Below, piece after piece: positions 3,796-30,705 of a stretch of 34,508 nucleotides of DNA (within the stretch, counting starts at the first letter, position 1; the number at the start of each line of letters is the position of its first letter). The notes below the pieces were generated by a model. The model had not been told where the DNA came from and did no database searches. It saw only the letters and a list, made by a program, of their open reading frames with translations. The DNA comes from Octopus bimaculoides (Eukaryota): assembly GCF_001194135.2 (NCBI RefSeq), contig NC_068997.1:43337840-43372347 (forward strand), read 5' to 3'. The position numbers and the translations under genes were made by a program.

Positions 3796-4230
3796 TCATC
3801 ATCATCATCATCATCGTTTAACGTCTGCTTTCCATGCTAGCATGGGTTGGACGATTTGACTGAGGGCTGGTGAACCAGGTGGCTACACCAGGCTCCAGTC
3901 TGATTTGGCAGAGTTTCTACAGCTGGATGCCCTTCCTAACGCCAACCACTCCGAGAGTGTAGTGGGTGCTTTTACATGCCNNNNNNNNNNCTCCAGTCTG
4001 ATTTGGCAGAGTTTCTACAGCTGGATGCCCTTCCTAACGCCAACCACTCCGAGAGTGTAGTGGGTGCTTTTACATGCCACCGGCACGAAGGCCAGTCAGG
4101 TGGTACTGGCAACGGCCACGCCCAAAATGGTGTATTTTACATGCCACCTGCACAGGAGCCAGTCTAGTGGCACTGGCACGATCTCGCTCGAATGTCTTTA
4201 CACATACCACCGGCACAAGTGCCAGGAAGG
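3796..4230 (-). mobile_element. family C (RTE 3' end), young copy spanning an assembly gap
   Basis: (CAT)n tail, gtttaacgtctgctttccatgctagcatgggttggacg, ctggatgcccttcctaacgccaacc; CpGs retained. Confidence 0.88.
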
Positions 4231-23295: not shown

Positions 23296-23317
23296 GTGTG
23301 TGTGTGTGTGTGTGTGT

Positions 23318-23401
<84 letters not shown>

Positions 23402-23402
23402 T
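23296..23402. repeat. (GT)12(AC)n(ATT)n compound microsatellite
   Basis: Direct inspection; the GT and AC blocks abut, forming a spacerless palindrome. Confidence 0.97.
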
Positions 23403-23569
23403 AAAACAGTTTGATTCGGCTCCATGTGTCTTAATGTTTCACAAGCTTCTAGCAGATTATTCAGTAAACTAAGCCTGAAAGAGAGGATTCTGCTAGAAGC
23501 TTGCAAATCAAACTGTTTTAAATAATAATAGATGTAAGCCTTACTTTTTTTCTTTTGTTTGTCCTCACT

Positions 23570-25975
23570 TGTATGGTGGTTGTCTACTCCTTATGCAGAG
23601 TTTGACCACCTCCTGTACCTACACCTTAGCACCATCATGGTATCTGATGTGGCTTTTTAAACCAGACAATGCTTTGAAAAGACACCCACATAGATTGCAT
23701 ATCCAACTTGGACCACCAAGAGCTGCAGTTAAGTTCTGATCTTTGTGGATCTTAAAATGTCTTTTGAGGCCTCTGTTAGATTTGCAAACCTTCTGGTATA
23801 CATTGCATTCAAAGGTGTGCACAGACATATAGGTAGAATAGTTGGTGTGGATTCGTTTTCTATGGGTTCACAAATGAGATTTGAGCCCAGCAAAAGAAAG
23901 GCATGGTCTGTCACAAACCTTTTGGTCATTGTGATTCACGTTCTCAATCGAAACATTCTTTTTTAAATCTCTCTTGAGTTTTGCATGTGTTATCCTGGCC
24001 TCTTCAAATGCTTTCACTCCACTCCACACTTTTGTTCACTATCCAGCTCAATCCGAAGCAAGGGTTTCTATGTCCTCTGGATTCATTCCAAGTAACTTCA
24101 TGGTAGTCCTTATGCCATCCTTAAACCTCTTTTTAGGCTTACACTGATAGCGTTTCCCTTCTGCAAGCTCACCATAAAACAGCTGTTTAGGTGTGCATTC
24201 ATCTGCCATTCAAACAATATGGCGACACCATCTCATTTGGTTTTTCAGAATCATTGCTTTAATTGAAGTGATGCCTGCAGACCCAAGGACATCTGTGTTT
24301 GGAGTAAAAGAACTCCATTTAATGTTTAAAATGCGACGAAGGCATTTTTGGTGGAATTGTTCTAACATAACATTCTTTCATAACGTGTCCCTGTTTCAGA
24401 AAAATACAACAGGGATGGTAAAACAAATGTTGTTATTTATATGTCGTTGGTGCCAAACGTATGACTCCAAGCCATCAAATACTTGTGCTGCCCTTTGAAT
24501 TTGCAGATGTATTTCTGTGTCCAGATTTCCATCAATTTGTACAGAGCTTCCAAGGTAGATGAAAGAATCAACAACCTCAAGTAACTTACCCTTAACAAAA
24601 ATTTTAGTGGGATTGCAAACAGCACCACATGCAGGTTGATACATTACAACTGTTTTTTTCAAGTTGATGGTCAAGCCAAAATCATCACAAGCTGAGTCAG
24701 ATGCAGATGCAAGAGATTGCAAACCTGTTTCAAAATGACTGACTAGATCATGATTGTCAGCGTATAAGAGTTTCCTAATGAGTGAAGTAAAAACCTTTGT
24801 TTTCAATTTCAGTCTGGTCAGATTAAAAACATTCCCTGTTGTTTGATATTTTATGTAAATACCCTCCTCAGAGTTTTGAAAAGTATGTGACAGCACAACA
24901 GCAAAGTATATTGCAAAGTGGGTGGGTGCATCAAGGTCTCCTTGCTTTATTCCATTTTCCATGCCAAAAGATTCAGAAAGCCTACCACCAAAATTAACTC
25001 TAGCTTTCATATTTTGATGCAAAGCCCTGATCTTGTTTACAAATTTTTCTGAGCAACTTACTTTCCTTAGAATTAGCCACAGGGCATTTCTATTAACAGC
25101 ATCGACTGCTTCGCTCAAATCAACAAAGTCATGGTATAGGGCAAGATTCTGTTCAATGCACTTTTCCTGAAATTGTCTGGTAGTAAAGATACAATCAATT
25201 GTGCCCCTGGAGGAGTGAAAATCACATTGAGACTCAGACACCATGTTTGGAACTATGAAGGTATTTAAATGTTCTAACAGAATGTGGGCAAGTACCTTTC
25301 CAAACACAGAAAAAAGCAAAATCCCACAAAAATTACCACACAGATCCTTTGGCCTTGATTTATACAAGGAGACTAAAATGGCATCAGTCCAGTCTTCAGG
25401 CACTTTCTCAGTTCTCCAACAATGACAAATTAATATATTTAAGAGTTCAAACATTTTGTCACCCCCATATTTCAAGACTTCTGCACAGATTCCATCAGAC
25501 CCTGGAGACTTATTGTTATTCAGCTTATTCACAGCTAAATAAATGTCATTTAGAGTTGGTTCAAATGCCATCTCCTCTATAACTGGAAGGTGTTCGATTT
25601 TTTTTTTTCTACCATCCTCATGTCAGCAGATGATGGCCTTTTTAAAAGTGCAGAAAAATGTTCTACCCAGCACTTCTGAATAGAAACAGTGTCAGTCAGA
25701 AGCAAACATCTATTTGCTGTTCTCGCTGGAGCTATTGAAGACGATTTTGCACTAAGGTTTGGTGTACAAGTACCTGTGCAGATGAATAATTTTCAGTGAG
25801 TGTAGCTTGCACTGCACTACCCCCACCAAGAAGACGTTCACCAGTGTGACATGAAAATTGACAAAACCAGGAACTTCCAAGGTCTCAGGTTTTATTTTGG
25901 AGATTTCCTTCTAGGTGGATTACCAACCAAGGTGAAAGAGCTTCTACCTGCCCATGAGGCAAGCTATCCTGTTCC
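23570..25975 (-). mobile_element. BovB-like RTE LINE, copy 1 (decayed, endonuclease region missing)
   Basis: RT ORF 24396-25571, linker WVEHFSALLKRPSS near 25650, 3' tail gaggtggtcaaactctg...gagtagacaaccaccataca, and a putative 5' UTR at about 25750-25975. Confidence 0.9.
23619..25571 (-). pseudogene. RTE ORF2 remnant: reverse transcriptase plus three C-terminal C2H2 zinc fingers, one frame with 7 premature stops
   Basis: NNKSPGSDGI, SESQCDF, FVDLSEAVDAV, GIKQGDLDAP, KYQTTGNVFNLTRL (BovB-type), LYADN (degenerate YADD), GLTINLKKT, FIYLGS, FHQKCLRRILNIKW, then three zinc fingers. 25571-23828 is a multiple of 3. Confidence 0.93.
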
Positions 25976-26467: not shown

Positions 26468-26514
26468 CATATATATACATATATATACATNNNNNNNNNN
26501 ATATATATATATGG

Positions 26515-27055: not shown

Positions 27056-27835
27056 TATGATAGTTGTCTGCTCAATACAAAGATTGACCGCCTCAGTGTA
27101 CACAATGCTCAGCTCTGGCATGAGATTATATGTGGAATTTTAGACCAAACATACTTTTAAAATGGTGTCCACATAAATTGCATGCTAGATTTAGTACAGC
27201 TTAAACTGCCTATGGTGTCTGATCTTATTGAACCTTGAAATGTTTCTTCAAACTTTCTTGAGATATGAAGATCCTGTGGCATATATAATATTGCAAAGAG
27301 CAAACTGATAGGTATGTTATAATCAGTAGGAATTGTGTGCTCTTATATGAGATTTAAGAGCAGTCTTAGACAGGCAAATTTTGCCATAAAATATACACGT
27401 AGAAAATCTTCCAAGTTCATATTCCCTTATTGGCTGTTTATTTTTCTTATTTTCTTCTTGGTATTTGCCCGTATTAGCCTGTTTTGTCCAAAAGTTCTCA
27501 CACCATCCCATATTTTTGAATGTAAGGTAGAATGATCTGCTGCAAAACTTACCAAGTTTTCTTTAGATCAGTTCCTATATTCTTCAAGTTCTCCTTCAAT
27601 GCACCCTTGAATTTTTTTTCCCTGGCTTATACTGCTTCCTGAACAGGTTTCCCATAAAACAATTCTGTAGGGATATGCTCATCAGCCATGCGGACGATAG
27701 GTCTGGACTGTCGCACATCATTTTTCAAAGTTATTACCTTGATGGAACAAATGCTTGATTCGGCTAGAACATAAAGTGCCAGGAGTGAATGAATTCCATT
27801 TCATTTCCAGAATTTGGTGTAAGCAAAGATGTTAA
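27056..27835 (-). mobile_element. BovB-like RTE LINE, copy 2 (3' fragment with three zinc-finger remnants)
   Basis: LHQILEMKW, IVRMADEHIPTELFYG, KKFKGALKENLK, CIFYGKICLSKTALKSHIRAH, CNI/CHRIFISQESLKKHFKVQ, CNLCGHHFKSMFGLKFHI*SH, and a tail gaggcggtcaatc...gagcagacaactatcata like copy 1. Confidence 0.85.
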
Positions 27836-28068: not shown

Positions 28069-28350
28069 AAGTGTATGGTCCATAATCCTCCTCAATAGCA
28101 CCTTTGGATACAACACTTCTCAGAGCTCCTTAACAGGCCCTCTAATATCAAAATAAATATTATTGAATTAATAGAAAATTACCCAGTTGTAGCTGAAATG
28201 GCATCAAAACTAACTGGAAATGACATTATTGCTGCTGTACAAAAATTAAATAACAATAAATCTCCTAGCCTTGATGGTATTAATGCTGAAGTTCTCAAGC
28301 ATGGAGGTGAGAAAATGGTAGAACTTTTACACATAGTAATATCCTATTGT
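28063..28350 (+). pseudogene. BovB-like RTE linker and RT N-terminal fragment
   Basis: LKEVYGP*SSSIAPL...HFSELLNRPS...MASKLTGNDIIAAVQKLNNNKSPSLDGINAEVLKHGGEKMVELL, homologous to the start of the copy 1 RT. Confidence 0.85.
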
Positions 28351-28904
28351 TATGTGTGTATGTGTACAGAGAGAGAGAGAGAGAGAGAGAGAGAAAACTC
28401 TGCTTTACAATTTAAACACATATGCTGGCACAATTCTTTTGATCTGGATTAATTGACAATTAATGTTTTTGGGTGACATTAACTATAGAGACACTTGCTG
28501 ATATTTTTGCAGACGCACATACAAATACATGTACACACACATATATGCACACTTATGCATGTGCATTACACACATACATATCATTTTGTCAGGCCCTCTG
28601 AAACCAGTGAGATTGATGCCATTATTAGGTTCATATGAGATAAAAATACATAAGTGTATTTGGAAGGAATTTGCCGACAGGAATGGAGTATTGTCAAGCT
28701 GATATGGTTACAAGGAAATATTAGGCAAATTAAGTTGTATCAGTAGCTTAGAGAGATAAGACACTTGGTAAGGGGCATATCTACTGACATTTTTGTATGT
28801 CCAAGATTAGCAACTACTGTGAGTGCTCAGGTGTCCACCTCCACCTGTTCTTCTATGTCAATAAAATCTGCTACCTCTTTTGGCATTCGAAGTGTTTTTA
28901 GTTG

Positions 28905-30261: not shown

Positions 30262-30705
30262 ATCTTTTATTTTTTACTTACTTCAGTCATTGGATTGTAG
30301 CCAAACTGGGGGCACTGCCTCAAAGTGTTCAGCTGAACAAATTGCCCCCAGCACTTTATTTTTTAAGCCTGATGCTTATTCTGTTGTTTCCTTTTGCTGA
30401 ACCACTAAATTATAGAGGCATAAATGAACCAACACTGGTTGTCAAGTAGTGAAGTTAGTTTAATTGACATTACCTTCCCTCAGAATTTGTGGCTCTATAA
30501 GTNNNNNNNNNNTATTTATATGTATACACAAACACACACTAGGTTTACATGCAGTTTCCATCTCCTAAATTACCAAATTCACTGAAGGCATTGGTTGGTC
30601 CAGGTCTATAGTAGAAGACACCCAAGGTGGTATACAATGGTACTGAACATGAAACTATGTAGTTGCCAAATGAACTTCTTAACCACACAGCTATGACTGT
30701 GCCTA
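30262..30705 (-). mobile_element. SINE family A split by an assembly gap
   Basis: 3' half at about 30262-30452 and 5' half at about 30540-30705. Confidence 0.7.

Follow-up and report, generated by a model that had tools for sequence, protein, structure and literature searches.

The window, a stretch of 34,508 nt from Octopus bimaculoides (contig NC_068997.1), carries what is most probably a dead copy, truncated at its 5' end, of an RTE-clade LINE whose intact protein ends in three spaced C2H2 zinc fingers. The layout of this family, its conservation and its affinity to the RTE clade are shown by its copies and relatives. The intact protein would consist, in this order, of an AP-endonuclease, a reverse transcriptase (RT), a thumb and tail region and three C2H2 fingers in a single ORF of ~1,100-1,200 aa, and the ORF would be followed by a UTR of ~45 nt that ends in a conserved motif and a microsatellite.

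A decayed LINE insertion in the window

The insertion, here called copy A, spans a pre-RT linker, the RT, the thumb and tail, three C2H2 fingers and the 3' UTR (Table 1). A sequence-only reading of the window had described three in-frame C2H2 motifs downstream of an RT, and translation of the window confirmed both the frame continuity and the positions of the ligands. A single minus-strand frame, running from 25571 to the stop at 23619-23621, holds the RT and all three motifs, each with the spacing C-x2-C-x12-H-x3-H. The isolated 69-aa ORF that had been described as covering the last two motifs appears in the ORF list at 23619-23828. The fingers do stand in series, as the word "tandem" in that reading implies; the word is loose, however, because they are 15 and 18 aa apart.

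The RT ORF matches Pfam RVT_1 (E 1e-13, 51.9 bits, cut-off 29.6) and shares 54-58% identity with the intact relatives P0034-P0036. An APE/endonuclease domain was not found in copy A by tblastn with P0036 and L006_EN, because the copy is 5'-truncated near 25741, where the homology begins. The linker remnant and the RT lie in different frames, and a frameshift near 25575 therefore separates them. Downstream of the RT ORF, seven premature in-frame stops (24396, 24378, 24210, 24048, 24039, 24036 and 23868) precede the terminal one, and the conserved tail motif lies at 24051-24209. A 9-nt deletion removed Cys1 of finger 1, while finger 2 is positionally orthologous to the second finger of the relatives (14.1 of 21 residues identical). 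Copy A is dead, with its seven premature stops, no endonuclease and all four ligands complete in finger 3 only, and on its own it is an ordinary dead insertion. Neither a target-site duplication of at least 8 nt around copy A nor a microsatellite directly past its 3' end was found.

Table 1. LINE-derived features of the window, in window coordinates
Feature	Position	Strand	Remarks
Copy A, decayed 5'-truncated RTE-clade LINE	23573..25741	-	tblastn with intact relatives P0036, L006_EN
Pre-RT linker remnant (..CWVEHFSALLKRPS..)	25580..25741	-	frame differs from RT
Reverse transcriptase ORF, 391 aa	24396..25571	-	Pfam RVT_1
RT thumb and conserved tail (..MRWCRHIV*MADECTPKQLFYGELAEGKRYQCKPKKRFKD..)	23925..24395	-	RT frame, six premature stops
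Finger 1 remnant, QKVCDRPCLSFAGLKSHL*TH	23862..23924	-	Cys1 -> Q; TGA between both His
Finger 2 remnant, CNVYQKVCKSNRGLKRHFKIH	23745..23807	-	Cys2 -> Tyr
Finger 3, CNLCGCLFKALSGLKSHIRYH	23637..23699	-	four of four ligands kept
Terminal stop codon of LINE ORF, TAG	23619..23621	-	in the reading frame
Copy A 3' UTR, ~45 nt	23573..23618	-	GGTC, hairpin, GAC, terminal motif, CCAT
Predicted 4-bp hairpin, ACTC-loop-GAGT	23586-23601	-	in copy A 3' UTR
Terminal motif GAGTAGACAACCA	23577-23589	-	CCAT next
Copy B, decayed 3' end from another, related family	27057..27825	-	tail and three finger remnants
Copy B finger remnants	27335-27397, 27228-27287, 27120-27182	-	
Related-LINE fragment, pre-RT and N-terminal RT region	28105..28353	+	opposite orientation

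Other Octopus copies are 81-85% identical to copy A at the nucleotide level. The majority consensus of five Octopus copies has three intact fingers and no stops; neither an interruption between RT and fingers nor a lost ligand is seen in it, and the ligands of fingers 1 and 2 are complete both in this consensus and in 13 relatives. A Pfam zf-C2H2 scan (PF00096, threshold 25.2 bits), as proposed in the sequence-only reading, recognised the finger block of the consensus at 38 bits but did not reach the threshold in copy A, where scores were 17-22 bits and the top value of 22 came from finger 3 only. In all six frames of the window, an exact C2H2 expression matched once, whereas 200 shuffles gave 0.015 matches on average. 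Copy B has the 3' end GAGCAGACAACTATCAT, after which comes (AT)n. In ~174 kb of Octopus sequence, neither a SINE nor any other repeat with the 3' UTR of the LINE turned up.

Intact relatives and placement in the RTE clade

At least 13 intact relatives encode the RT, the tail and three fingers in one ORF, and together with the intact consensus they make the proposed multi-finger C-terminal module genuine. The signatures of the fingers in 13 relatives are C..C.R.lLSKAGlvnHlksH for the first (F1), C..CnKVCKS..GLKRHM.vH for the second (F2) and Ch.C...CkS.AGLkSHlRaH for the third (F3), and the position usually held by Phe in C2H2 fingers is Cys or Leu in these LINE fingers. One of these relatives, P0035, scores 38.1 bits against Pfam zf-C2H2. 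In the near-full-length contigs L006, L007 and L008, an Exo_endo_phos domain lies upstream of the RT (52.7 bits, Pfam); the near-intact L006 codes for ~1,180 aa, with one frameshift between endonuclease and RT. An AlphaFold2 model of P0004 predicts three beta-beta-alpha units with unit pLDDT values of 74-86 (mean 80). Foldseek searches with this model placed C2H2 arrays at the top by probability, and LINE-1 ORF2p for the N-terminal part, with no PDB match at E <= 0.001.

A census of 137 relatives, with tail positions set by phmmer coordinates, found no finger in 33 (mostly truncated), one in 69, two in 18 and at least three in 17. The earlier statement that RTE ORFs usually carry at most one such finger is therefore roughly right, since canonical elements have none, 69 of the 137 relatives have one and 35 have two or more. 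In a neighbour-joining tree built from the thumb and tail only, 13 of 15 three-finger proteins fell within one clade of 24 leaves. The three-finger module also occurs in marine metagenome assemblies, in relatives 46-59% identical, and the cnidarian Clytia carries a two-finger form. Judged by this distribution, the finger block is an old, inherited lineage feature that many marine-animal relatives have too, and not an octopus novelty; sequence comparison likewise indicates that the nearest sub-branch mostly has one C-terminal finger and that a single sub-clade, including the octopus families, has two or three. Novelty of the multi-finger form is not supported, the module being common to a whole sub-clade.

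One-finger relatives, with C..CGR.C.SRIGL.SH.RTH at the C-terminus, are common in coral, marine and insect assemblies. They have the same thumb, tail and 3' layout as the three-finger elements (hairpin, GAC(G)AAC and repeat tail), and their sole finger aligns with F1, but they are at most 47% identical to the three-finger query and most of their tails are (AAC)n.

By RT similarity, the family is an RTE-clade LINE. The RT of the window and those of P0034, P0035 and P0039 had RTE references as all of their best 9-10 BLASTP matches, with BmRTE-d15 on top (105-134 bits) and BovB/BDDF, JAM1 and HmRTE among the others, in agreement with the RTE/BovB-like label given initially; L1, CR1, Jockey, R2 and R4 references scored lower. 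This is a comparison of scores and not a tree, made on motif fragments of ~145 aa (Tay et al., Additional file 7) in a panel without L2, Rex1, I, R1, Proto2 and RTE-X. Identity to BmRTE-d15, represented here by its RT fragment alone, was 42-51% over 145 aa. No protein with a name was among the matches of the RT homologue search, which hence gave no clade label.

Malik and Eickbush, in 1998, are reportedly the source for the canonical RTE clade. This clade comprises C. elegans RTE-1, BovB/BDDF, Rex3 and the lepidopteran BmRTE/HmRTE (Tay et al. 2010, PMC2887409). The octopus-lineage relatives resemble these elements in having an APE endonuclease, a related tail motif (G.R..G.P..R..D ... DR..W) and a very short 3' UTR ending in simple repeats. 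By contrast, canonical full-length RTE, BovB and Rex3 proteins end just past the tail without any C2H2 finger, while the octopus lineage adds one to three.

An octopus RTE element with a C2H2 domain has already been published, namely RTE-2_OV, a brain-expressed RTE LINE of Octopus vulgaris with endonuclease, RT and C2H2 domain in a single ORF (Petrosino et al. 2022, PMC9115989); the published element suspected in the sequence-only reading is this one. Its ORF has 1,109 aa and runs almost directly into a microsatellite (PMC9115989). RTE-2_OV and the window family are alike in host genus and RTE clade, and in domain order, size class and microsatellite RTE-2_OV resembles relatives of the window family, although the comparison is with a published description that gives no finger number, and like architecture does not prove that the families are the same. 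Copy A is a dead, truncated insertion, whereas RTE-2_OV is an expressed full-length element. The literature on C-terminal C2H2 fingers in RTE, RTE-X and Proto2 elements yielded nothing beyond Petrosino et al. 2022.

The 3' end and the probable role of the fingers

The terminal end of copy A recurs in L004, where (TGTA)n comes after it, and in L006, where (AT)n does. Across L004, L006, L009-L022 and copy B, the 3' UTR is 17-80 nt long and gives way to (TGTA/ATGT)n, (AT)n or (AAC)n. In 17 one-finger relatives, the 3' hairpin has 8 pairs, is 98.5% paired and shows compensatory changes in 4 of the 8; its covariation of 0.316, against 0.072, was reached in none of 500 shuffles, and slid controls gave at most 0.075. 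For the window family, the prediction is a consensus structure of only 3+4 bp that has no compensatory changes. Since one-finger and three-finger relatives alike have the 3' hairpin, it can be explained without the additional fingers. A 125-bp palindrome at 23400-23525 was rejected as a LINE 3' stem-loop because the other copies end ~45 nt past the stop, upstream of the palindrome.

Eel UnaL2/L2 elements have a stringent type of 3' recognition, with a stem-loop and a short repeat tail. The relatives resemble them in that a conserved hairpin with compensatory changes lies at the 3' terminus, with a short stretch of conserved single strand and then a repeat tail behind it, but they belong to another clade, any 3' recognition of this type in them is putative, and the hairpin of the window family is short and lacks covariation of its own. 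Among other LINEs, R2 has N-terminal C2H2 fingers and a restriction-like endonuclease, and L1, CR1 and I-type elements have a C-terminal CCHC motif. These are zinc-binding nucleic-acid modules beside an RT, as here, and the role in target-primed reverse transcription is likely to be analogous. However, the C2H2 fingers of the window family are C-terminal, unlike those of R2, and are not CCHC motifs as in L1/CR1, and its RT scores far lower against R2 and L1/CR1 than against RTE.

By analogy with the C-terminal Cys-His domains found in other LINE clades, the fingers most likely grip nucleic acid during target-primed reverse transcription, in which they would act as a zinc-stabilised binding module. 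As a rough estimate, it is plausible, if a little short of probable, that they hold either the primer-template junction or the 3' end of the element's own RNA, with its hairpin, terminal motif and repeat tail. Contact with target DNA may, again roughly, be given a lower likelihood, and whatever remains would fall to a structural or protein-contact role. A narrower version, in which the three fingers together would be specialised for reading the element's own 3' end (covarying hairpin, GAC-AAC-type terminal motif and (TGTA)n tail), is improbable. If it were true, this sub-clade of RTE would possess a module for RNA or DNA recognition that might be re-targeted, and the rise from one finger to three would go along with a switch in the tail or target repeat.

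DNA binding is a classic function of C2H2 fingers, and R2 employs its own on target DNA. The LINE fingers could in the same way read target DNA and steer insertion into simple repeats such as (TGTA)n, and the tails do differ: where the 3' end is visible, three-finger elements end in (ATGT/TGTA)n or (AT)n, and most one-finger relatives in (AAC)n, (AT)n or nothing clearly repetitive. Since the three-finger elements form one clade, however, tail type is confounded with descent, and RTE repeat tails can also come from RT slippage (PMC2887409). The linkers of 11-21 aa are unlike those of contiguous DNA-reading arrays, as are the small residues (S, A and G) at the helix positions that usually contact bases, which are atypical of sequence-specific DNA readers. 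A role in reading target DNA is doubtful.

Origin of the finger module and implications

A further proposal held that the module is an octopus or cephalopod innovation, and that abundant 3' LINE fragments seed or expand host C2H2-ZNF genes. The finger-coding 3' end is the part most often copied because of 5'-truncation, two finger remnants lie 3.5 kb apart in the window, and the predicted 3,486-aa protein P0076 has a LINE tail and a degenerate finger remnant at its N-terminus. That remnant keeps its Cys pair but lacks the His ligands (it scored no finger in the census), and either exonisation or a faulty gene model could account for this N-terminus. When the octopus finger block was compared with 5.8 billion proteins, in a word-indexed search of limited sensitivity, it matched only the transposable element fragment P0002 and no host ZNF protein. 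The fingers thus match no annotated host ZNF gene, and the idea that they spread C2H2 cassettes to the host, raised in the sequence-only reading, is therefore unsupported. Moreover, Krüppel-type host arrays consist of contiguous fingers on ~7-aa TGEKP-type linkers, whereas the linkers here have 11-21 aa and TGEKP occurs in none of the 13 three-finger relatives. Given the module in marine metagenome relatives of such low identity and its two-finger form in Clytia, an octopus origin appears largely refuted on comparative grounds, and the proposal as a whole is very improbable.

That the motifs are foreign to the LINE (an adjacent host exon, another repeat in frame by accident, or chance), as the separate 69-aa ORF and the stops between RT and fingers in copy A might suggest, has a negligible likelihood and is refuted by the Octopus copies, their consensus and the intact relatives, given that the order RT-tail-fingers runs through uninterrupted ORFs in many relatives and recurs in further Octopus copies, that the conserved 3' end of the element comes after the fingers, and that only 0.015 motifs per window are expected by chance.

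With the fingers recognised as part of the LINE, the 69-aa "zinc-finger" ORF and similar octopus fragments are best masked as 3' ends of LINEs and left out of counts of host C2H2-ZNF genes, which matters for claims that ZNFs expanded in cephalopods. To our knowledge, recognition of own RNA is poorly studied outside L1, R2 and L2. In this RTE sub-branch, one to three C2H2 fingers take the place of the missing Cys-His domain and a covariation-supported 3' hairpin is kept; this protein module and cis-element offer a concrete, testable pairing for RTE-type self-RNA recognition.

Decayed copy in the window and the Octopus consensus

The element considered here, copy A, is read in a single minus-strand frame from 25571 to a TAG at 23619-23621, in which the reverse transcriptase (RT) is followed by a thumb and tail region with the motif ..MADECTPKQLFYGELAEGKRYQCKPKKRFKD.. 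and then by three C2H2 motifs, F1 to F3 in N- to C-terminal order. The sequence-only reading had reported three such motifs in the RT frame and an isolated 69-aa ORF; the frame is indeed continuous, the finger peptides and their coordinates proved exact, and the ORF is present. A strict C2H2 pattern matched once in the six-frame translation of the window (0.015 expected from shuffles), while Pfam zf-C2H2 remained below threshold on this decayed copy (22 bits vs 25.2). Seven premature stops lie in the frame downstream of the RT ORF. The copy starts near 25741 and has no endonuclease (EN), which is the usual 5'-truncation of LINEs, and the feature is an ordinary dead LINE insertion.

Four further loci in Octopus vulgaris (L001-L004) hold copies with 81-85% nucleotide identity. 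Alignment with these loci showed that F1 of copy A lacks Cys1 because of a 9-nt deletion private to this copy, and that its premature stops are likewise private. The majority consensus of the Octopus copies, ..NDLFVCTVCDRPCLSFAGLKSHLRTH..FQCNVCHKVCKSNGGLKRHFKVH..ICNLCGCLFKTLSGLKSHIRCHDGAKV*, carries no premature stop and is recognised above threshold by the Pfam models zf-C2H2 (38 bits), zf-C2H2_4 and zf-met. Therefore, neither the stop nor the loss of ligands that would set the fingers apart from the LINE is found in the consensus, and the aligned copies assign the finger block to the element itself.

For clade placement, RT motif fragments of 25 reference elements (Tay et al. 2010, Additional file 7; PMC2887409) were compared by BLASTP with the RT of copy A and those of three intact relatives. 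The 9-10 top matches were all from the RTE clade; the best was BmRTE-d15 (42-51% identity over 145 aa), followed by BmRTE-d14, BmRTE-d05, HmRTE, JAM1 and BovB/BDDF, and the L1, CR1, Jockey, R2 and R4 references scored well under these. As measured on a short fragment and against a panel without L2, Rex1, I, R1, Proto2 and RTE-X, these matches support the RTE-like identity first proposed for the element.

The family of copy A is of a kind already published for octopus. RTE-2_OV, a single-ORF LINE of 1,109 aa from the RTE clade that is expressed in the O. vulgaris brain, was described with an endonuclease, an RT and a C2H2 zinc finger "relatively rare in RTE elements", and with a microsatellite starting where the ORF ends (Petrosino et al. 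2022, PMC9115989). The running text of that paper interchanges the N- and C-terminal labels, and the figure legend gives the order as Endo, RT, C2H2. A brain-expressed octopus RTE of this kind had been named as a caveat in the initial reading. According to a 2026 re-annotation paper, the sequences of that study were not reported (PMC13282606); the family found here may therefore be RTE-2_OV or a sister family.

Positions of the features in the window and of the terminal motif in homologous loci
Feature	Position	Strand	Remarks
RT ORF of copy A, 391 aa	24396-25571	-	Pfam RVT_1, E 1e-13
F1	23862-23924	-	C-x2-C-x12-H-x3-H spacing; Cys1 gone, TGA between His ligands
F2	23745-23807	-	C-x2-C-x12-H-x3-H spacing; Cys2 to Tyr
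F3	23637-23699	-	C-x2-C-x12-H-x3-H; sole intact finger of copy A
Isolated ORF, 69 aa	23619-23828		
Terminal motif GAGTAGACAACCA, copy A	23577-23589	-	identical to L004; ~30 nt past stop
Position homologous to the 3' hairpin	23582-23607	-	4-bp version only
Terminal motif GAGCAGACAACTA, copy B	27061-27073	-	(AT)n next
Terminal motif GAGTAGACAACCA, other loci	L004 10737-10749; L006 4353-4365; L008 4630-4642		just before microsatellite
Copy B, decayed 3' end of a second LINE	27057-27825	-	three finger remnants; 3.5 kb from copy A
Fragment of a related LINE	28105-28353	+	pre-RT and N-terminal RT; 65% identity to first 52 aa of window RT
Palindrome, 125 bp	23400-23525		near-perfect; predicted -44 kcal/mol
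Compound microsatellite	23296-23401		(GT)12 (AC)26 (ATT)10
ORF, 193 aa	33823-34404	-	Tc1/mariner-like DDE signature (..QQDSAPCH..NSPDCNPLDY..)
10-base N runs (three)	3981-3990; 26491-26500; 30503-30512		assembly gaps or masked bases

Among the neighbouring features, copy B is the tail of a second, more divergent three-finger family with its own conserved 3' end and (AT)n, and one of the N runs separates it from copy A; the related LINE fragment lies in the opposite orientation. The palindrome, which is bounded by 17-bp terminal inverted repeats (TTTAAAACAGTTTGATT) and contains a further, internal one, is located between (ATT)n and TAATAATAG, outside the LINE; it looks like a MITE, and no other copies were found in ~174 kb of Octopus loci. 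On their downstream side, the palindrome and the LINE are immediately followed by the compound microsatellite. Pfam DDE_3 gave a weak, sub-threshold match to the 193-aa ORF (18 bits vs 28.6).

Finger number across the RTE clade

Many uninterrupted relatives came from ENA and JGI assemblies when the tail-plus-finger peptide and the RT were used as queries. In thirteen of these, RT and tail are joined by three strict fingers that fit within 130 aa, and F3 is followed by 2-22 further residues up to the C-terminus. Each finger has its own signature (F1, C..C.R.lLSKAGlvnHlksH; F2, C..CnKVCKS..GLKRHM.vH; F3, Ch.C...CkS.AGLkSHlRaH), and Octopus F2 and F3 are best matched by the finger at the same position in the relatives. 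The linkers measure 11-21 aa, and TGEKP was absent from them in all 13 proteins. Three contigs of 4.5-5 kb (L006, L007 and L008) encode an Exo_endo_phos (APE) domain upstream, with one frameshift between EN and RT in L006; these contigs thus give the intact order as EN, RT, tail and three C2H2 fingers, over ~1,100-1,200 aa. The closest intact RT relative of copy A (P0034, 682 aa, 58% identity) ends in a single finger, and finger number thus varies among close relatives.

Full-length proteins of canonical RTE and Rex3 elements stop right past the tail G.RPRGRP..RW.D...DR..W and have zero fingers (PMC2887409). A phmmer search of 1.84 billion representatives with the three-finger relative P0004 gave 23,038 matches at E <= 0.001, of which 643 reached E <= 1e-30. 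In a census of 137 proteins covering the tail, one finger followed it in 69, two in 18 and three or more in 17; the 33 with none were mostly truncated fragments. Most full-length relatives (~1,050 aa) have the single terminal finger C..CGR.C.SRIGL.SH.RTH. Of the 80 loci returned by a metagenome scan, the three-finger loci were nearest to the query (46-59% identity, vs <=47% for one-finger loci). When thumb and tail, without the fingers, were used for a neighbour-joining tree, 13 of 15 three-finger proteins fell in one clade of 24 leaves, the remainder of which is mostly two-finger or truncated proteins. The multi-finger state therefore marks one sub-clade, as would be expected of a single expansion from one finger in the ancestor. 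The cnidarian Clytia hemisphaerica has a two-finger form and the moth Dendrolimus a one-finger form; the multi-finger state is not octopus-specific, and the idea of a wholly new octopus trait was not borne out.

Conserved 3' end and repeat tail

The element in L004 ends in ..GAGTAGACAACCAC followed by (TGTA)n, and the terminal motif GAGTAGACAACCA is unchanged in L006 and L008 despite an RT only ~54% identical to that of the window. Across 60-odd loci, the 3' UTR is 17-80 nt long, is ordered as GGTC(A), stem, loop, stem and GAC(G)AAC.. or ..GCAATCAWC, and runs straight into (ATGT)n, (AAC)n or (AT)n; hairpin-bearing UTRs were seen in L024-L083. The 8-bp hairpin was assessed in 17 distinct one-finger relatives: pairing reaches 98.5%, 4 of the 8 pairs carry compensatory changes, and the covariation score is 0.316, compared to 0.072 in shuffles (0/500 as high) and <=0.075 in slid controls. 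The predicted consensus hairpin of octopus-type sequences has just 3+4 bp and showed no compensatory change.

In four loci (L014, L016, L018 and L022) the ORF runs through the 3' element and ends ..MALV*, and the same nucleotides (..ATGGCC.TCTT.TCTGACAAGA.G..GCAATCA..) are untranslated in L007 and L011. Translation in some relatives and UTR status in others therefore suggest that selection acts on the nucleotide sequence, not on the peptide. Three-finger relatives (L013-L022, L004 and L009-L012) have (ATGT/TGTA)n or (AT)n tails, and many one-finger relatives (such as L028, L031, L043 and L080) have (AAC)n; tail type goes with sub-clade, and phylogeny is a confounder.

Possible roles of the fingers

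The AlphaFold2 model of P0004 (20-sequence alignment, mean pLDDT 80) predicts a helical thumb and tail and, after these, three beta-hairpin-plus-helix units with low-confidence linkers between them. Foldseek against the PDB returned no match at E <= 0.001; below that level, the C-terminal part had its highest-probability matches in the C2H2 arrays of CTCF, Helios, ZBTB10 and TFIIIA, and the N-terminal ~200 residues in human LINE-1 ORF2p.

CCHC domains serve in LINE clades such as L1 and CR1 and are absent from canonical RTE elements. The three-module extension described here is zinc-ligand-complete, conserved and under purifying selection, in a lineage that also keeps a structured 3' end and a repeat tail. 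The fingers probably bind nucleic acid while target-primed reverse transcription proceeds and would thereby fill the role of such CCHC domains. With linkers this long and residues this small at the recognition positions, reading of target DNA is the less likely alternative, and phylogeny confounds the link between three fingers and (TGTA)n tails. Because of the same two features, the favoured ligand is the 3' end of the element's own RNA or the primer-template junction, tentatively and at slightly less than an even chance. The hairpin is shared by one- and three-finger elements and thus does not explain the extra fingers.

The initial interpretation, which also proposed that the family could spread C2H2 cassettes through the genome, is partly supported. 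Spreading found no support: a word-indexed search of limited sensitivity, with the 106-aa Octopus finger consensus alone against 5.8 billion proteins, matched only P0002, annotated as a 'hypothetical protein' of O. vulgaris and itself a piece of this LINE. With its long linkers and no TGEKP, the finger block is distinct from Kruppel-type host arrays. Spreading keeps a small probability, through the limited sensitivity of that search and through a 3,486-aa gene model (P0076) whose residues 151-408 correspond to LINE thumb, tail and a degenerate finger remnant, CPTCGRTFRARLDF.., in which the Cys pair is kept and the His ligands are gone (0 fingers in the census); cadherin-like sequence follows this LINE-derived N-terminus, and the protein reflects either exonisation of a LINE fragment or a gene model that is chimeric.

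The architecture is widespread in public sequence data, and it is the comparative picture, a range in the RTE clade from zero through one to three fingers together with a covariation-backed hairpin, that gives the family modest interest.
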